NCBI GenBank assembly: GCA_003693705.1
Contig: RBZT01000767.1
Location: forward strand, 1 to 32,773
Source of the DNA: Polymyxa betae A26-41
Taxonomy: Eukaryota > Protista > Endomyxa: Phytomyxea
DNA length: 32,773 nt
Direction: 5' to 3'
Under the pieces are notes generated by a model that was not told the DNA's origin, made no database searches, and worked only from the letters and a program-made list of their open reading frames with translations. Positions 6,981-22,762 of the stretch are shown here, piece after piece (the first letter of the stretch is position 1; every line of letters begins with the position of its first letter). A program made the position numbers and the translations under genes.

Positions 6981-7963
6981 ACCATGTCTGGTTTCATTCA
7001 CAATGGTCAGATAACTGAACTGGAGATTTTAATTCTTTTATTCAAAAAAATTCCATGACAATAAATCTCATTTCAAGCTGTTGGAGTTAAAGGCGTCATA
7101 GTGACGGACCTGCAGCTGCAGATCATCGAATGACAAGGTTCGACTCACTCTGTTATTGGTCCAGCCTTGAGCGCTTTCCACTCGTAGCTTCTATCAAGTT
7201 ATGGGACCGGCAAGCAGCCCTCACTGGGATCTTCTGCTTGTCTAATCAAGTTTTTTGGAGGTTTGCTCTACAAACCCTAACCCTGTGTGCAACTATAGAG
7301 TTGCGAGCGGCCTCCCTTGCACAACTAGTCAACTACCGTAGTTGGGAGCGGCCTCTCTTACAAGAGAGTAGCAGGGTCGAAGCGAGCTATACTTAATGAC
7401 GGCCGATTATCTCGGCTACCAACCGACAGAGCGGAGGGCGTCTTGGACGGCAAATCTGGATTTCTATCGCCCCTTGTAGAAGGACCTAAGAGAGGTTCGA
7501 AGAGGTAAGGTAAGGCACCTGCAAAATCCTACAGGGACTCGAACCCTAAACCCTAAATCATCTATTAAAAACCTACTGGCTGTTGCCCAGCTTTCTATCA
7601 TAGTTCGTTCTATCGAGGATCCGTTGTCACATGCGCAGGAGAGGAACTCGCCCATAAATTCATTCTGGTATAAACTGCTGCATTAATTTACTAATTTCCA
7701 TCTTCCATTTTGGTATCTTGCCTGCGCTTTCGAGCTTTCTGGATAGCTTTGCCTGCATTCCTTGCAAACGGACAGCTTTCTTCAATTTGGGTGTCCAGAA
7801 TTTATTTGGTTTACGCTGTATCTTTTTTATATGCTACAGAATATTTCATAATTTCGTTTACTTGGCTTAGAGTAAGCCTTTCGCTCTCTTATGACATACT
7901 TTTGTATTTTTGAGAAAGGAAGAACTTTAGAACAATTCGAGGCTTTCCATAGCAATATTGACA

Positions 7964-9152
7964 ACACACTAGTTCTGTTCCATGTTTATCACGCTTGCGG
8001 AAGCCTTCAGGCTGCTGGAGATAGATCTCCTCCGAGAGTTCGCCATACAAATAGGCAGTGTCGATATCCATCTGAACAATTTCAAGGTCGTGATGTGCAG
8101 CGATTGTCAGCATCAGGCGCAACGATGTCATCGAGATCACCGGGGAGTACGTCTGTTGGTAGTCAACCCCTTTCTTCTGTGTGAAGCCTCTCGCAACGAA
8201 GCGGGCCTTCTTTCGAATGGCTTCGCCATCAGCTCCGGTCTTCACTTTGAAAATCCACTTACCTTGGATTACTTTTCGCCCCGGTCGCAATTTGACGAGG
8301 TCCCAGGTTCCGTTCTTCACTAGAGATTGATACTCACTTTGCATAGCTGTTCGCCAGCCATCATCTTCGAGTGCTTCAGTGATGCTTGCAGGTTCGTCTG
8401 TCACTTGATAGGCGCGAACTCGCTTCATACGCCTCCGTGCCTCTTCGTCTTCTTGGTGAAACGTGAAGCGATCTGGCTCAGCAAGCAAACGCTTCGTTCT
8501 TCGTTCCGTATTCATCACAACATCGGGCACATCACCAATTTCTACCAGTGAGGTGTCAGCGTTCAATTCTTCAAATGTCGGCGCCTCGATGTCCATGGTT
8601 TCATTGTCATTAGTCAGGGTGTCAAGAGTTTCATCCATATTCGGCCCGACCTTCATGTCCTGCTCGTCGTCGTCTACGACCGGGACTGGTACGGCAGAGG
8701 GCGCGGCCTCCGATTGCTTTATCTCATCGGTCGCGATAGCAGTGTCATCAGCGATATCATTGTTGTCAGTGATGATGATCGTGTCCCGGGCAGTATCAAT
8801 CGGTTGGAGCGCATGAGTGTCAACGATTGGAGTTGCTGTTATTGCCACTGAATTGGGGAAGGTTAGTGGTGTCGTGTCTAACGGTGCAATCTTAGCTTCC
8901 GGGTCAGTTTTCAGCGGGAACGAAGTTTCATCGAAAGTGGCTCCATGCGTCAGGAAGATCCGCCTCGACTTGAGCTCCATCACGATATGACCCTTCTGCC
9001 CAGCAGGATAACCGAGAAATACACACGGTACTGAGACATCGTCGAGCTTCTTACGCTTCTGCTTTGGGATAGTAGCGTATGCTTTGCATCCAATTATGTG
9101 GAAGTAGTCGACGTTGGGTGTCCGCCCGGTCCATATCTCTTTGAGTGTCGGC
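7964..9152 (-). mobile_element. Ty1/Copia pol fragment (integrase C-terminus/SH3-like region, linker, RT N-terminal part)
   Basis: EIWTGRTPNVDYFHIIGCKAY...KKLD...CVFLGY; EPASITEAL..W..AMQSEYQSLVKNGTWDLV; KWIFKVK; KARFVARGFTQKKGVDY; QMDIDTAYLYG. Homology stops abruptly at LVC, before the YVDD motif. Confidence 0.93.
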
Positions 9153-14679: not shown

Positions 14680-14890
14680 TTCTGGCATCTCTCTCTGCAT
14701 CGATAGCTTATACAGCCTTTTCATGTGAAGGAGGAGGTGGCCTTATAGATGACTTTGGCAGCTCTGTTCAACCTCATCATCGGGTTTGTTCTGTATAATC
14801 AAATCCTTATAAGAGGCGCGTCTCAGCTTCGATATCAAACATTCCAGAAAATACAATAAAAAGGAACTAAAAACCAGAATCATTGGCAAA
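14680..14890 (-). pseudogene. Decayed paralog of the PPxY gene at 16477-16711
   Basis: Reads ...FLECLI...PDDEVEQ / PKSSIRPPPPSHEKAV*AIDAER versus LECLCD...LDDDVGQPPKTGARPPPPSYEEVVKAIEAER. Frameshift and in-frame TAA. Confidence 0.7.
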
Positions 14891-16476
14891 CGGCGATAGA
14901 GGAGGGCAGGATTCAAGACAGTTAGGCAAAAGAGGGCGATTTAGCTCGAAGGATCTGATCTTTAAGATTGTACGATATGGATTGATCAAGATGAGATAAT
15001 GACAACAATGACTAATCATACTGGCCCCCCACGGGTCCCAGCCTCAGGCATCCAGTGATCAGATTCCCAGCAGAGAGATATCGTCGTCTTGTTGACTACC
15101 AGTTCCTCATTCCGCCTTAAGCTCAGCCAAGGCCATTACCAGAATCACGAGTTCTATGATCGTGTTGGTCATCGCCGAGTATAGAGCGCGCAGGAATCTG
15201 GCTAGATCGGAAGCAAGACGAAGGGCCAGTTTGACGACGAGCAGCCACACAGCGTGATCCGGAACCGAGACATCGCCTTCAATCAATAAAGGATCAGATA
15301 CACGTAATGTAATGCTTAAATACATCTCGTATATTGAGATATTGATATATTGCAGACGAAATTAATGAGAAATCGATATAAGAAAGCTGTAAAGAGCTGA
15401 TTGTTAGCCTGAGCTCGTACCGGTACTCGTCTGCTTGTATGATTGTTGGCGTTTCCGGATCAGAATCACTTTGTCGCATTATTCTCTGCATTAATAGCTG
15501 ATACAGCTTCTACATAAGTTGGAGGCTCTGGAGTTTTGTTGTCTTCCGGCGGTGGGTTGTTAGAATGACAGCAAAGCCAAAGACAGGCAAAGAGCTATCA
15601 AGCTATGAGCAGGTATCAGTCATTAAGCACAACATCGTCATACCTCACAACAAACCTCTAAACAGCAGATTACGAAGTCGACGTCCCTGCTTGAACTTGA
15701 TAGAGCCATCCTCGGCCGTGGCATGTGTCCAGACAACGTCTCTCAATAAAAGTTTTTTGCAATCTGGATTGATCCGCAGATCAACCTTCGGAGAAGACAG
15801 GACACTCATAGACCCTGAAGGCTCCCAAGGGCTCCGCAGTCCCCGTGCCCAATCGGATCCGATGGTCGACGTCCAGACCAGCAAAGAATGAGCTGTTGGT
15901 CGGCCTTCTTGCGGCTTCCAAAGTAGACGACGACAGACGGAGACGATGGACGACCCGTTCCTATCCGGGGCTGTACTGGCCCCGATCAAGTGAACGTCCA
16001 GGATTATGTTGTCCCGTTGCACGTGATCACATAAGAATAGTCACCGGCGGCAATCAACGGTAACCCTGGACCTTATGTAAAGCGATCTTGGAGCTCGAAC
16101 TGTGCCGGCTTTTTGCTTTTGAATTTCTATTCATTAGATGAATTGGTCAAAGATGGGATCGCTGTCTTATAGCTACATTGGCGCTGCTGCCTGTTCGACT
16201 GCTAACCTCTATTCCCTTCAGACCGTACCAATACAATTTGTTAGGAAACAGTTTGCAGATGTGGTGCATTTCGCGGCGTCCTATGACAAACTGCATCAAG
16301 CTCTATGGTAATACGGAACTAAAGCCACTTAGAAACTAATTTATACATCTCGTAAACTAACATTTGCATCTGCTATGATGCTGACGAATAATAAAATTAC
16401 TTAACAGGTTGATTGCAACAACTAATTGTTAACCGTCCCGCTTTCATCTAAACCATTGCCCATCATGGGGCTTCTT

Positions 16477-16711
16477 TCAGGCAGAGGCACGTCTTTCTGC
16501 TTCAATAGCCTTCACCACCTCTTCATAGGAAGGAGGAGGTGGTCTTGCACCCGTCTTGGGAGGCTGCCCGACATCATCATCAAGTGAATCCTACATAACC
16601 AAATCTAAGCTCCAAGAAACTTGGCCTTAGCACCGATCATACATCGCATAAACATTCTAAACATGAAAATATGACAGAAAAGCACAGAAACGGGCCCCAT
16701 TCGTTCGACAT
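16477..16711 (-). CDS. Small Cys-rich membrane-anchored PPxY protein A (60 aa); exons 16711-16643, 16590-16477
   Basis: MSNEWGPFLCFSVIFSCLECLCD|DSLDDDVGQPPKTGARPPPPSYEEVVKAIEAERRASA*. 52-nt GTATG...TAG intron. TATAAAAAG about 30 nt upstream of the ATG. Not in the ORF track. Confidence 0.72.
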
Positions 16712-17340
16712 GAGAAAGCTGACGTCCTCGGCCTCTTTTTATAAGATTATGAGGGCAAAGGCGACAGAGTGGCGACGATATCATTCACACGCATGAGCAA
16801 GGAACACAGATTTCAGTTTTATGCGCAGTTAGTTCAGGCAAATGCAAATTTGATGATGAAAGTCTGCGAGAGGGTAACTAACAGCCAACATCGGAGCTAG
16901 GACCGAGCCTCCGAAGTGGGTCCCGCCTATATCACGCGGCGACTGATGAAACTCCCAAGGGCTGTCTTCGGACCACATAACTTTGATCCGTTTGGAGTGT
17001 CTTTACGTATGGACGCCGGGCTCTGTTTGCGTCGAAGACAAGACATGGAATGGCAAACAAATCGTGCAGCTACTTTGCGACAATGGACAGACAGTCTGTT
17101 ATGGTGAAACCGTCTGTCGTTGATTGATACAAACTGGATAAATCTTAAATGAAATCGTCACACTAATCGTACGTGTGTAAGCAGAGACATCTATTGATTT
17201 TCCAGCCCGGGTTCATTCAGCCAACTGTTTATTCTGTTCAATTGCTGGCGACGATTGGACAATCTGCAACTTCTTGAATGCACTTTTGTATCAATATATA
17301 ATTAGATAGGCATTTGCAATAATAATCGAAGCATAATGGT

Positions 17341-17765
17341 TCAGGCATGGCGGCCGAGTCGCATAGCTTCTTCGTAATTAGGAGGTGGTGGAATGGATAC
17401 AGAAACCTGATGATGCCTTTCATCGCTTGAGTAATGATGATTTCGAGCCTGTTGGGCATAAACAGGCAGTCCATAATTAGTTGGACTAGGTTGCTGCTCA
17501 TAATTCATTTGCTGATGACGAGACGGTTGCTGATGAGAACAGTGAACAATAGCAGGCGTCTCATCTGTTTGAAGCACCTAATAAACTGTTATTGATAGAT
17601 TCGCCTTAATAAAAAAAATGTAAGATAAAGTGCAAAAGCGAGACCGACCTCCTCTCTCGAGCAGCAGCACCAACGTATACACCTCCACAGCATCCATAGC
17701 ACTAGAATATCGAAGGCAAGGATGAAGATTCCTGTAGAAACCTGTGCTGCGTGGTCACCGGCCAT
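17341..17765 (-). CDS. Single-pass Cys-rich PPxY protein B (117 aa); exons 17765-17649, 17577-17341
   Basis: MAGDHAAQVSTGIFILAFDILVLWMLWRCIRWCCCSREE|VLQTDETPAIVHC...PPPPNYEEAMRLGRHA*. Phase-0 GT-AG intron. Confidence 0.8.
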
Positions 17766-17802
17766 GGCTCGGCTGCACTAAAGGATCTCGTTTAGTCGGA
17801 AA

Positions 17803-18166
17803 TGAAGATGGAGTTGGACCAAATCTGCGACTGCGCACTTTTGAAAATCTCGACTAAATAATCCGCATTAATCAGTTTACGATTAATTCACGGATCAAAA
17901 AGCGAGATTTTGCCGTTAAGGGTGTGTTGAGTCGCTGCCAAATTTCAGGCTGCGCGCCTCGGTCTTCAAAAGGTCTGATCTTTCTAGAAAGTGAAGACGA
18001 TGGAGTTTGACCAAATCTGCGACTGCGCACTTTTAAAACACTCAACTAAAATAATCCGCAACCCGCATTAAAACGGATCAGAAAGCGAGATTTTGCCATT
18101 GTTTGGTCGTGATGAGTCTCATGTTTGGCTGCCAAATTTCAGGCAGGGCGTCGACTCGGTCTTCAT
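17803..18166. repeat. Two diverged ~170-bp direct repeats upstream of gene B
   Basis: GATGGAGTT.GACCAAATCTGCGACTGCGCACTTTT...AAAGCGAGATTTTGCC...GCTGCCAAATTTCAGGC...CTCGGTCTTCA at about 17803-17968 and 17992-18166. Confidence 0.9.
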
Positions 18167-18671
18167 GCTTCAGTGGTGCGTTTGACGTTCGCGAATAAGA
18201 ATGGGTCTAGCTGTAGCACGACGGGAATTATCAAGGACACTGCCCTACGCTATTTTCGCCAAAATTTCGGGAGGGCGACGGGCTGGGAAGATTCCAGGAA
18301 GGTTGCCGTTCACTGAGCCAGCATCGATAGTGAATGTATTCGTCATGGAAGCGAATGCGATAACGATATGGTCAAGCCCATGATCGCAGTTCTATAGATT
18401 GAGTTGCAGGGCGAAGAATGGTGTACACAACATATCGCTCGTAATCACTGCCCCCGATCAGGTCGATTTTCCACTGAGATATGCAATTGTTTAGCTACGT
18501 TAATGAACTCCAGATCTGTGCTGGTCGTTGGAACTGCTGAAGGCAGAGTATTGAAAATCCAGGAAGAGCGTGACGCTCTGCCAGTGTACGTAAAGCACGA
18601 TAATAAAGCGTTTCTCGCATTGCCACCACCCGGCCTCAATGGAGCATAATACAGTGACATTTACGAGGCGT

Positions 18672-19016
18672 CTACACACGTGACGGCACGTTGTACTGAG
18701 GGGGGCGTACTTGCCCCCCGAATTCGTAACGAGAATCGGGGATTCTGGGCGGATAGGTAACTTGGGGTGGTAGTGGTGGATGTTGGGCGTTCTGTTGGCC
18801 GGAACATCGTATGATTACAGGACGCTCAATCCTCACTGTTCGTGTGACCTGTAAGGGCAAGAAGATCAGAGATGGATCGGGTGATGGTTGGGCGGCACGA
18901 ACCGTCTCGGTATAGCAGATGCAACATCGGCAATATTTCCAGATACACCAGAATATGACGACGTACAGGACGACGAGCAGCACAGCCCAGATTCCGGCCA
19001 GAGACGAGTCGGCCAT
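18672..19016 (-). CDS. Single-pass Cys-rich PPxY protein C (96 aa); exons 19016-18903, 18848-18672
   Basis: MADSSLAGIWAVLLVVLYVVIFWCIWKYCRCCICYTET|VTRTVRIERPVIIRC...VRPPQYNVPSRV*. A 54-nt in-frame GT...CAG intron is inferred at the family-conserved position. Confidence 0.8.
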   Translation of the reverse strand: MADSSLAGIWAVLLVVLYVVIFWCIWKYCRCCICYTETVRAAQPSPDPSLIFLPLQVTRTVRIERPVIIRCSGQQNAQHPPLPPQVTYPPRIPDSRYEFGGQVRPPQYNVPSRV

Positions 19017-19249
19017 TGTTACCTGGGCCAGATTGGCAATCCGATTCCTTTCCCGGCGTGACCCACAACCCGGGCCTCGGACTTCGGAACGTTCCAACCA
19101 AGATTGCACTGCAAATCGTTCCAGAAATAGCCAGCTCGAGGCCCGTCCTAGATGAGAGAGGAATCCGCAGTCGATCTTGGCTGTCTTTGCGCACGATCGG
19201 TGGCCCTTTATGTAGATTTGGGCTATAAATCCTTCGCTGTATCTTGAGC

Positions 19250-19647
19250 TACCTAAATCGGCAGAAATGTCGCATCAGTATATCGATAAGGAGATCCTTG
19301 ACGGCCAGGTCCACCCGCGCATTCCACGAGTTCACGACGATGGGCGACCGGGCCGGTACGACCTGAGAAGCCTGGGCTTCGAGTTCCGCCGCATCGACAG
19401 TCAATCAGTCGAATAAGCGGAATTGCAATGAGAAAGTTGTGGCTGGAACCTTACAAACCCTATCAAAAGCGATGGCCAGTACGGTTTGTAAGCGCCCGCT
19501 GTACCTGTTTGCGTTCAGCTTGCCTGCAGTGCTAGAAATGGAGTTTCCAGCAGACGATGGCTATCATGAAATCGTCAGCCGCCTCGCCCGAAGACGATGA
19601 CAATGATGAGTTCGAATGAGATGACGACGAGCTCTTAGCGCCCACTT
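19250..19647 (-). pseudogene. Decayed member of the PPxY family (resembles gene D)
   Basis: GTG GGC start context like gene D. Reads GAKSSSSSHSNSSLSSSSGEAADDFMIAIVCWKLHF*HCRQAERKQ|GTACAG donor, with a distal remnant PYRYTDA versus PPSYTDA. Confidence 0.5.
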
Positions 19648-20330
19648 CGGCTGGCTGAATCAACGATAATAGGGAATTGACGAGTTGGAATACCTATACG
19701 AAGACCCCGGAACCTGAACCACCCCTGAGAGACAATAAAGGTGTCGCTCCTCTTCAAAACCGAAAACTTATTATCTCTGTAAACTGTTAGTCTTGTCAAA
19801 ATAAAAAATTGAGAACTCGAGCCCGAATTGAGTCAGGATTAACCTTTAGGAGGAGTGCTTCAGATTTTTGATGAAATTCTGAACTCTTGTGTGCATGTTG
19901 ATGAAATGCCTCAAACATATTAGATAGCATGGTCCTGGCCACAACTCATACTTTACATTCTCCAATGAATTTAGAGATACTCTGTAGGTAGTATTGATAT
20001 TGGTAGAGAGGCCCTTCGGAGGTCACCGGGTCGGCTCCGCATCAAGCTCTTACAGCTCCGCAGCCACCTTCTACCAGTCTAGGGGGTTCCTCCGGAGAGC
20101 TCCGAAGTGTGATGACCCGTAACCAACATCATTGCCTATCGATCTGAAATATTTTTCGCCTTTGAGAAGGTTTTTGTCACTCAGTAGCTTTGTAGCATCC
20201 AAGTTGGTTCTAATATAAATCCAAGGTCAAGCCTGTGTGTTTTGAGATGAAGTGAACGCCTGACTTTGAAAGAAATTTGATGGGCTAAATCACATAATAG
20301 TGAAGCCTCCGTATAATCAATGAATAGACT

Positions 20331-20902
20331 TTATAATCCTACATGCCGTATAGCATCGGTATAGCTAGGAGGCGGTAACGGCTCCGTATCAGTTCTGTCT
20401 GGCACCGATACGACAGTATGCGAGGGGGCCGTCGGCCGTACTGGCTCTCCCGAACGGCGGTAACGTGCATCTTCGTAGCTGGGCTCATCATCGTAATACT
20501 GTTGATGGGTCTCGTACTGGTGGTAATACTGGCCCTGATGATGATGGTGATGCATCTCGTGTCCATGATGGCCGTGCTGACATGAGCATTGCAGCACGAC
20601 GGGTGTGGGAACCGCTTCGACGGTATCCTCGTCCTATTTTCATCAATCAATTAAATTTCATATCAGCATTATAAAACAGTTGAAAAGGGACCAGCACGTC
20701 CGTCCTGGTGGCCAAAACTCCCTACCTGACTGCAGACTGTTCGTTTACAGAAGATCCAGCAGCAGCACCCCCAGAATAGCAGGGAGACGACGACAGAGAT
20801 GGTAACGGCTTCCGAGGAGACAGAGCCGGGCGACGATGACGAACTCGAATACGACGAGCTCGAATACGAGTAGGAATCGGGCGAGTTGCTGTACGTGCCC
20901 AT
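20331..20902 (-). CDS. Single-pass Cys-rich, His/Tyr-rich PPxY protein D (159 aa); exons 20902-20726, 20633-20331
   Basis: Ser-rich N-terminus, TM AVTISVVVSLLFWGCCCWIFC, phase-0 intron, then PVVLQCSCQHGHHGH...EPSYEDARY...PPPSYTDAIRHVGL*. Confidence 0.83.
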
Positions 20903-21399
20903 CGCTGGCTTGCTGAATACAACGACTTCAAGAGACTGGGGAGCTGGACGAGACGAGTTGACCAATCACGTGATCACGTCGCCAAACCTCGGTCTACGGA
21001 AAGGAAAGTGCGCCACTTGGCAATTTGTGCGCACTTTTTTCTTTGAAACTTGTACGTACGTCTGTTTGGTTATTTTTGTCAGAGAGAAGTGAGCTCAAAT
21101 ATCCTTTCGAAACGTCGGAAGAAACGAGAGAGCTAGCATGACCTGTGCCAGAATATACCGCAGCAGCCTGAAAAGTGTTTGAGACCTGGCATTGCTGGGT
21201 GAAGTTAGAAATTGACATTAGGGAGAACAGGTTGAAGGATTTGTAGACTGATCTGTTAAGGATGCCTTAAGGCCAGATTTAAGCATCACTAAACCTCTCT
21301 CCAAATGGCTGATCTGATTTTTTTATATCGCTCGTTACATATACCTGCAAGAAGAAAAAACAGTTTCGATTCTTGTATGAAATTCGAGCGCCTTTGTGT

Positions 21400-22090
21400 A
21401 CTCTGTTTTATTGAATACTGACCGATTGATGTGGCCTGTTGCTGCCCAAACACTGAATGATGGAATCTTCTAATACTAGCATGCAGATACCTGGCTGACA
21501 AACAGGATATCGACCAGGAAGAGATATCGTCGATATAATACAAACGCAAAGTACAAAAGCTTGCAGTGGATAATGGGCATTCATAGTATGTAATAATGGT
21601 AGAATAACGTTTGAGACGATTCTGGATGCCGGACAGGAGCGGCTGCAGCGCAGCCATTCTCTAACAATCAGAAGGTTCCCTCTGCTACAGTCAGCTTCAT
21701 TCGGTTTCCATTCGTCTGGAAGGGATAAAAGACATGCTGCAATCAAGGTTAATCTGAAACCAATGACAGATAGGTATTTGGTTCATAGCAATATCGCCTA
21801 CATCTAGCAATTGCCCTAAAGAAAAATTGAAGCCACCCTCGGATCTGTGGGAATCTTATGCCAAGATACGAGCGCATCAGATATCCTGAATCCACTAAAC
21901 CGAAGCTTGCTTGTATATCTTGCTTGTATATGGTTATCCCACGCAATATCATGAAGTATTTTCTGAAAATGCCATTTTATTACAAAGGCATCGGATGCAG
22001 TTTGTCTGCATTGATTACGGAAGAGCACAGAGGATGTCTAGAATCTTGCAAGTGCCACTTTCTTTGGGCGAAGTTTTCGCACAGCTGCAT
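21400..22090 (-). pseudogene. Possible decayed ankyrin-repeat gene
   Basis: Ankyrin-like fragments in different frames (CSRGNLLIVREWL, ESGTCKILDILCALP, QASFGLVDSGYL). Many stops. Weak. Confidence 0.3.
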
Positions 22091-22100
22091 AATTTATCGC

Positions 22101-22762
22101 TCATACTTGCCTTATAACCTCATTGTAGCTCGGAGGCGCTGACAGCTTCGAATCGGGTCCTTCTGGTACCGGGATCACAGTATCTGGGGCTGTCGGGCGT
22201 ACGAACTCCCCAGAACGGTGGTAGCGCGCATCGTCATAGCTGGGCTCGTCGTACTGATCATACGTTTGCGGTGCCGTAGGGCGTACTGGCTCCCCATAAT
22301 CGTGATAGCGTGCATCGTCATAGTTTGGTTCGTCGTAATACGGCTCTTCATAGTATGGCTGCTGCTGGTACTGCTGCAGGGTATGATGCTGGTGGTGCTC
22401 GTGGCCGTGATGACAGTCATTGCAAGGGCAGTCCAGTACAATCGGTTCCTGGATCCGAATGACCTCATCCACGTCGTCTTCCTCGTCATCCTGCGGAATG
22501 TTCGTAAATCGATATCGAATGCGGATCTGAAACTTTCAAACAAGGACAAACGAGTGAAGAGAAGTTCGAATTTTACAACAACAAAATGAAAAGTCAGGAA
22601 TACCTGATTTCGGCGGGATGCACGCTTCCATATCCAATAGATCACGAATACCACAAAGAAAATGAACATCCAGATAACCCAGCTGCCGTCAGACGAGGAC
22701 CCCGACCTGGTGGTCGTGTGCGACCTAAACTTCTTGGAGCCGCCACCCCCTTTACGACCCAT
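22101..22762 (-). CDS. Single-pass His/Tyr-rich PPxY protein E (182 aa); exons 22762-22604, 22490-22101
   Basis: TM WVIWMFIFFVVFVIYWIW followed by KR, phase-0 intron, then PIVLDCPCNDCHHGH, a duplicated YDEP.YDDARYH..GE.VRPTAP block, and APPSYNEVIRQV*. Confidence 0.85.

Follow-up and report, generated by a model that had tools for sequence, protein, structure and literature searches.

A Tandem Array of Small PPxY Genes in Polymyxa betae: Candidate Membrane-Anchored Ligands of WW-Domain Proteins

Eight tandem copies of a small gene, all on the minus strand, occupy 14.68–22.76 kb of the window examined here (the whole 32,773-nucleotide stretch of DNA that was analyzed, contig C514 of the Polymyxa betae genome). 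In our preferred reading, to which we give a probability of about 0.45, the array encodes very small, membrane-anchored proteins of a birth-and-death family specific to Polymyxa, which would dock WW domains through PPxY (PY) motifs, with a protein combining two WW domains and a RING finger as the most likely partner. P. betae is an obligate intracellular root parasite of sugar beet, and its published draft genome has 1,001 contigs, 27,085,946 bp, and a G+C content of 45.1% (PMC6328671). The genome searched in this study has 27,085,814 bases in 1001 contigs.

Five Open Genes and Three Further Copies

The five open genes, A–E, that a sequence-only reading of the window had placed in this region were found on the minus strand as two-exon models. 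They follow the common plan it had described, in which a short N-terminus leads into a hydrophobic segment and a juxtamembrane Cys cluster (basic residues in E), followed by a phase 0 intron and a low-complexity tail with PPxY, and their terminal motifs are those first listed (PPSYEE, PPNYEE, PPQY, PPSYTD, and PPSYNE). In six copies (A–E and a further copy, A′, with PPTY), PPxY is 6–15 residues from the stop. The introns of A–E, for which splicing is predicted from sequence, are all GT-AG, in phase 0, 52–92 nt long, and located directly after the Cys or basic cluster. A Rab2 gene in the same window provides a local yardstick: three of its introns are 51–56 nt long, lengths that those of A–E resemble, and one is ∼370 nt, with donors GTAAGT, GTATGT, GTGATG, and GTATGA and a CTRAY-like branch site.

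Genes E and D have the most elaborate tails. Gene E (22101–22762, minus strand) has exon 1 at 22604–22762 (53 aa) and exon 2 at 22104–22526, followed by TGA, and a predicted product of 194 aa; its intron (22527–22603) is 77 nt long, and use of a second possible acceptor, also in frame, would move the start of exon 2 to 22490 and lengthen the intron to 113 nt. Exon 1 encodes the hydrophobic segment WVIWMFIFFVVFVIYWI followed by KRASRRNQ, and the tail has CPCNDCHHGHEHHQHH, two EP(N/S)YDDARY..GE.VRPTAP units, and PPSY at 22125–22136. The DNA for this tail has an internal repeat (22186–22253 and 22270–22337). Gene D (20331–20902, minus strand) has exon 1 at 20726–20902 (59 aa), an intron of 92 nt (20634–20725), and exon 2 at 20334–20633, followed by TAA, for a product of 159 aa. 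A Ser-rich N-terminus, the hydrophobic segment, and CCCWIFCKRTVC are encoded in exon 1, and the tail combines CSCQHGHHGHEMHHHHH with a single EPSYEDARY..GEPVRPTAP unit and with PPSY at 20361–20372.

The other three genes are shorter. Gene C (18672–19016, minus strand; 96 aa) has exon 1 at 18903–19016 (38 aa) and exon 2 at 18675–18848, followed by TAG, with a hydrophobic segment, then KYCRCCICY, and PPQY at 18693–18704. Because its putative 54-nt intron (18849–18902, donor GTTCGT) is in frame and without a stop, it could be retained instead of spliced. Gene B (17341–17765, minus strand; 117 aa) has exon 1 at 17649–17765 (39 aa), a 71-nt intron with a weak donor (17578–17648, GTCGGT), and exon 2 at 17344–17577, followed by TGA; its hydrophobic segment is followed by WRCIRWCCCSREE, and the tail has LPVY as well as the terminal PPNY at 17374–17385. 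Gene A (16477–16711, minus strand; 60 aa) has exon 1 at 16643–16711, a 52-nt intron (16591–16642, donor GTATGA), and exon 2 at 16480–16590, followed by TGA. Exon 1 encodes MSNEWGPFLCFSVIFSCLECLCD, a short, weakly hydrophobic Cys-rich segment, and PPSY is at 16525–16536.

Two decayed copies had been reported; the count has to be raised to three extra copies, of which A″ and D′ are decayed and one is perhaps intact. A-type copy A″ (14684–14883, minus strand) has a frameshift between its acidic and PY stretches, a change of PPSY to PPSH (14723–14740), an in-frame TAA (14708–14710), and a lost donor. In D-type copy D′ (approximately 19290–19645, minus strand), the start ATG is replaced by GTG (19645–19643), the hydrophobic segment is shortened, and there is an in-frame TAG (19532–19534); a GT donor (19504–19503) and a relic of the start of exon 2 (..SPIVVNSW..) remain. 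The third, A′ (15466–15709, minus strand), is of A type, with exon 1 (15644–15709) ending ..FVICCLEVCCE and exon 2 at 15469–15594, followed by TGA. It has kept its GTATGA donor and lost the ancestral acceptor, and use of an upstream acceptor yields an open exon 2, LFACLWLCCHSNNPPPEDNKTPEPPTYVEAVSAINAENNATK, with PPTY at 15514–15525. A′ may thus be an intact gene.

Three other features lie within or next to these copies. Directly upstream of gene B, a block of ∼190 nt is duplicated in tandem (17804–18150) with 89–93% identity in parts. The sequence GTGATCACGTG, which contains a palindrome with a CACGTG core, occurs at 16020–16030 and 20967–20977, ∼310 nt upstream of the start of A′ and ∼65 nt upstream of that of D; with two exact copies, at D and A′ only, it is not significant, and we rejected it as a shared promoter motif. 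On the plus strand, opposite the part of gene E for its His/Gln/Tyr-rich tail, is a very hydrophobic, 123-aa open reading frame (ORF; 22218–22589). It was rejected as a gene, since codon-position statistics favor the minus-strand frame, and it most likely results from the composition of the sense strand.

One Divergent Family with a Conserved PY Motif

The copies are homologous and constitute one family because they are in tandem, have the same intron position and phase, and match each other in pairwise comparisons. In a tiny search space, E-values are 5e-6 for C–E, 3e-4 for B–D, 7e-4 for B–C, 1e-4 for A–B, and 2e-4 for A–D; in pairs other than D and E, similarity is weak but consistent. We take the copies as two subtypes, one of A, A′, and A″ and the other of B, C, D′, D, and E. 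The description of the sequences as very divergent is borne out: one Arg and the motif itself (R, P, P, and Y) are the sole invariant columns among A–E. Tandem homologous copies, two of them decayed, likewise agree with the proposed birth-and-death mode of evolution.

Genes D and E are real coding sequences under long-term purifying selection. Over 95 aligned codons of exon 2, the proportions of synonymous and nonsynonymous differences are 0.61 and 0.25, the synonymous divergence (dS) is ∼1.2, and the ratio of nonsynonymous to synonymous divergence (dN/dS) is ∼0.25; differences at codon positions 1, 2, and 3 number 28, 17, and 49, respectively. It is from this ratio and the bias toward third positions that we conclude that the frame is selected. 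The two genes also have in common a CxC-poly-His tract and the unit EP(S/N)Y(D/E)DARY..GE.VRPTAP, present once in D and twice in E, and VRPTAP is retained in all three of these units at near-saturated synonymous divergence.

The PPxY motif in the array is beyond chance. At the level of DNA, the pattern PPPxYx[DE][AV] has three matches in 27 Mb, all in the array, versus one for a control in which the pattern was reversed. The relaxed pattern PPxYx[DE][AV] has 27 matches in the genome versus 19 for the control, and 5 of the 27 are within the 8 kb of the array.

These findings bear on whether the array is silent or dying, that is, made of young orphan ORFs with little or no expression, whose motif plays no present role in the cell. 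Decay of two or three of the eight copies, weak donors at some introns (GTCGGT in B and GTTCGT in C), and the lack of products of the locus in protein collections that hold other P. betae transcripts are all as this explanation predicts. But the dN/dS of ∼0.25 between D and E and the third-position bias at a dS of ∼1.2 indicate long-term selection on the protein, and in five or six copies the frame is still open, the intron is compatible with splicing, and the PY motif is retained. We therefore regard a silent array as quite unlikely.

Membrane Segment, Topology, and Cys Cluster

The best 19-residue Kyte–Doolittle mean is 2.06–2.70 in B–E and 1.55 in A, and the A type may not span the membrane. 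On its C-terminal side the hydrophobic segment is bordered by basic residues; the flank on its N-terminal side is neutral or acidic in B–D. By the positive-inside rule, B–E are predicted to be signal anchors with the N-terminus out and the C-terminus in, which would put their tails in the parasite's own cytosol. The (L/P)PxY motif is the ligand of class-I WW domains, and the requirement for such a motif in the NEDD4/Rsp5 adaptor class agrees with what the array has: the motif is present in six copies, B has LPVY in addition, and the positive-inside rule predicts that it is on the cytosolic side.

This predicted topology makes it highly improbable that the proteins act at the host interface, an alternative raised in the sequence-only reading in which PY tails exposed to sugar beet cytoplasm would hijack host WW proteins. 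The organism is indeed an obligate intracellular root parasite (PMC6328671). Fast-evolving, lineage-specific tandem families are, as general knowledge has it, typical of host-interaction genes. However, the array proteins have no signal peptide, and the positive-inside rule places the tail inside the parasite. Moreover, plants lack NEDD4-type ligases, the group with C2 and WW domains being confined to Opisthokonta and Apusozoa (PMC3673628).

In A–D, four to five Cys, candidate sites for the palmitoylation proposed in the sequence-only reading, are within ∼12 residues past the hydrophobic segment; E has none. The CxC motif and poly-His tract of D and E adjoin the membrane and could bind metal. 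It is conceivable that the PY motif is incidental and that these are real, small, Cys/His-rich membrane proteins with another role, for example, metal binding or buffering through CCC/CxCC and CxC-poly-His. Dense Cys clusters in A–D, CSCQHGHHGHEMHHHHH and CPCNDCHHGHEHHQHH in D and E, respectively, and the lack of a recognized domain in the array proteins are consistent with such a role. Yet A, B, and C have no His tract, E has no Cys cluster, and PPxY is in every nondecayed copy and mutated to PPSH in the decayed A″, so we judge an incidental motif to be distinctly unlikely.

Candidate Partners in the Genome

The sequence-only reading had named a ligase of the NEDD4/Rsp5 type, with WW and HECT domains, as the partner, and none was found in the genome. 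The WW profile has 16 matches on nine contigs, and the HECT profile has 23 matches, corresponding to 11 loci on ten contigs. Contig C1 is the only one with both, at least 40 kb apart, and for each of the 11 HECT loci the 10-kb stretch upstream is free of a WW signature. The Nedd4 group has been reported only from Opisthokonta and Apusozoa and is dated to their common ancestor (PMC3673628).

The genome does have class-I, PPxY-type WW domains, two of them in a protein with a different catalytic module. A 261-aa ORF on the minus strand of contig C245 (C245:6968–7753; L008:814–1599) encodes two WW domains and, after a Pro-rich linker, a C-terminal C3HC4 RING finger; Pfam matches are to WW (1.9e-20) and zf-C3HC4_3 (8.6e-10), with no C2 and no HECT. 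The WW pair matches WW1-2 of ITCH at 9e-30, and also NEDD4L, WWP1, YAP, and KIBRA. Like NEDD4-family ligases (ITCH, WWP1, and NEDD4L), the protein has tandem WW domains, ∼55% identical by eye to ITCH WW1–WW2 and with the class-I signature ..NH....TTW.DPR; unlike them, it has a C-terminal C3HC4 RING instead of HECT, lacks C2, and is only 261 aa long. The gene is transcribed, as its sequence is present in spliced form in a Logan contig from run SRR18189690, with an intron of ∼45 nt removed and a short final exon after the intron. The WW-WW-RING layout was not found by a literature search or among the protein matches of a word search.

Another possible reader of PPxY is a protein encoded on the minus strand of contig C1 (C1:85646–86072), which has three or four class-I-like WW domains and then a long coiled coil in a layout like that of KIBRA/WWC. 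A Tsg101-type ubiquitin E2 variant (UEV) domain is also present in the genome and could be a reader of the PTAP motifs of D and E.

In a second role for WW binding, the array proteins would be cargo or budding factors instead of adaptors, with PTAP and PPxY motifs that direct the proteins themselves, by a route dependent on ubiquitin and ESCRT, to multivesicular bodies or to vesicles that bud outward. Parallels are ARRDC1, viral late domains, and Sna3, a PY-bearing cargo in yeast. In D and E, conserved PTAP (one and two copies, respectively) is paired with a terminal PPSY, and both UEV/Tsg101 and class-I WW proteins are encoded in the genome; A, A′, B, and C, however, have no P(S/T)AP. We consider this role unlikely for the array.

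An Orphan Family that Resembles Known Adaptors in Layout

By the searches made here, the array is an orphan, Polymyxa-specific family, with the proviso that its tails are short and compositionally biased and distant kin may escape such searches. Pfam was scanned exon by exon and with the uninterrupted reading frame of C. No family exceeded the threshold for the array proteins in these scans, the best trace being TMEM52 over the PY stretch of B (E-value of 0.65; a score of 10.4 bits where the cut-off is 26.4). The resemblance to WBP1, VOPP1, Shisa, and RCR proteins that had been proposed, and that to TMEM52, hence do not extend to family membership, as no profile match was above the gathering score. 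CYSTM proteins have a Cys-rich membrane segment at the extreme C-terminus, preceded by a Pro/Tyr/Gln-rich N-terminal region; the order in the array is reversed, with the hydrophobic and Cys-rich part N-terminal and the low-complexity tail C-terminal, and Pfam yields no CYSTM match.

Beyond Pfam, a word-indexed protein search with exon 2 of D yielded no match, a HMMER profile of the B–E exon 2 alignment had 0 matches at E ≤0.001 among 1.84 billion protein representatives, and ESM Atlas yielded nothing for exon 2 of D or for the C245 WW-RING protein. No relative of the array proteins was found in metagenome contigs. The genome itself, when searched with B, C, D, or the profile of B–E exon 2 (a search that the sequence-only reading had proposed), yielded the array and no member beyond it. 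The absence of products of the locus from protein collections suggests that the array was never annotated.

A gene on contig C19 (L039:943–1711, minus strand) has a plan like that of the array and no detectable sequence similarity to it. Its product has a hydrophobic segment and a stretch very rich in Cys, and PPAY is 25 residues from its end. The product is 100% identical to an NCBI entry, 'hypothetical protein BVRB_032380, partial [Beta vulgaris]'; because of this identity, the beet entry most likely stems from P. betae DNA that contaminated the beet assembly.

Rcr1/Rcr2 exemplify small membrane proteins with PY motifs that serve as ligase adaptors (PMC7401822). Like these yeast proteins, those of the array are small, occur as paralogs, and have a short N-terminus predicted to be luminal, no cleaved signal peptide, one hydrophobic segment, and a disordered PY tail predicted to be cytosolic (PMC7401822). 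Unlike them, they have no sequence similarity to the family (Pfam RCR was not matched), and no counterpart of Rsp5 (C2-WW-HECT) was found in the genome; the juxtamembrane Cys cluster, PTAP motifs, and poly-His tract are extra features of the array. The combination of a membrane anchor and a cytosolic (L/P)PxY near the end of the tail is also that of animal NDFIP1/2, WBP1, VOPP1, PMEPA1, TMEM52, and Commissureless/PRRG4, in which the motifs recruit or activate WW-domain ligases and the rest of the sequence is often poorly conserved, as in the array (PMC5578492). The array proteins differ in belonging to none of these families; the animal proteins work with NEDD4-family HECT ligases, not found here, and the NDFIPs have three membrane spans. 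Members of the array are thus of the proposed kind, PY-motif membrane proteins, and candidate ubiquitin-ligase adaptors; the partner named for them and their placement in a known family are not supported.

A further resemblance is that of D and E to ARRDC1 and viral late domains, in which P(T)AP and PPxY are likewise united in one short disordered tail. Through this pairing, Tsg101 and WW ligases are brought in for budding driven by ESCRT. The array proteins differ in that they are predicted to be integral to the membrane and lack an arrestin or Gag/matrix fold; in addition, A–C are without PTAP.

Chromosomal Setting

Neighbors of the array are ordinary eukaryotic genes: Rab2 (∼11.9–13.0 kb), an AlkB-like oxygenase (23.2 kb), a TPR protein, and an HAS1-type helicase. 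The G+C content of the array is the same as that of the host genome. Positions 1–2000 of the window, by comparison, are AT-rich (30–32% G+C vs. ∼45% elsewhere) and have an ORF with a P-loop motif at 126–788. A viral origin of the array was rejected, as the AT-rich, virus-like island (1–2470) is 12 kb away and the array has host G+C and host-type short introns. At 7889–8983 on the minus strand, 6 kb from the array, a 364-aa ORF has motifs, identified by eye, of a Ty1/copia-type reverse transcriptase fragment, a transposon relic.

A Model for the Array and Its Implications

Several observations weigh against the array being a family of membrane-anchored WW ligands paired with the WW-RING protein. 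The library of 1.84 billion protein representatives holds P. betae transcript contigs, yet products of the locus are missing from it; this absence is a weak sign of low expression. The protein and metagenome searches found no ortholog, and conservation of PPxY is known from paralogs alone. PPxY is a four-residue motif within tails rich in Pro and Tyr, and the PPQY of gene C may be a secondary PY, as it aligns with an internal VRPTAPQTY unit of E and not with the terminal PPSY. The single-pass plan, proposed for all copies, is predicted for B–E and doubtful for A and A′, in which the hydrophobic segment is short and weak. Finally, the basis of the pairing between the array and the WW-RING protein is their co-presence in one genome.

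With these points taken into account, we infer topology, binding, ubiquitination, and acylation as follows from features of the sequences. Proteins B–E would be signal anchors, N-out and C-in, and A and A′ perhaps only lipid- or hairpin-anchored. Toward the end of their disordered cytosolic tails, one to three (P/L/E)PxY motifs would dock class-I WW domains and bring a WW protein to the membrane. The partner would most likely be the C245 WW-WW-RING protein, with the C1 multi-WW coiled-coil protein as second candidate. Once recruited, the ligase would ubiquitinate its membrane-protein neighbors and/or the PY protein for ESCRT-dependent sorting, to which the PTAP motifs of D and E may add a direct ESCRT-I handle. 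The array proteins would act as adaptors, self-sorting cargo, or both.

A bolder version, which we hold to be tentative and somewhat unlikely, is that a rhizarian lineage that never had NEDD4-type ligases built an equivalent system, composed of NEDD4-like tandem WW domains fused to a RING finger and private, fast-evolving PY membrane adaptors, among which D and E would use a Cys/His metal tract and PTAP/ESCRT-I handles for down-regulation of cargo.

In animals and fungi, PY adaptors and NEDD4-family ligases decide which transporters and receptors stay on membranes, and descriptions of this logic usually link it to WW-HECT ligases. Should the array not be expressed, it would merely be a decaying orphan family. 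If it is expressed and its products bind the WW-WW-RING protein, adaptor logic would extend beyond Opisthokonta and Apusozoa and work there with another catalytic module. Plasmodiophorids are unculturable crop parasites and virus vectors, and almost nothing is known of their cell biology; the array would, if the model is true, provide a first handle on membrane-protein turnover in this group. Its interest is mostly in the possible pairing of PY adaptors with a WW-RING protein in a lineage without NEDD4 ligases.

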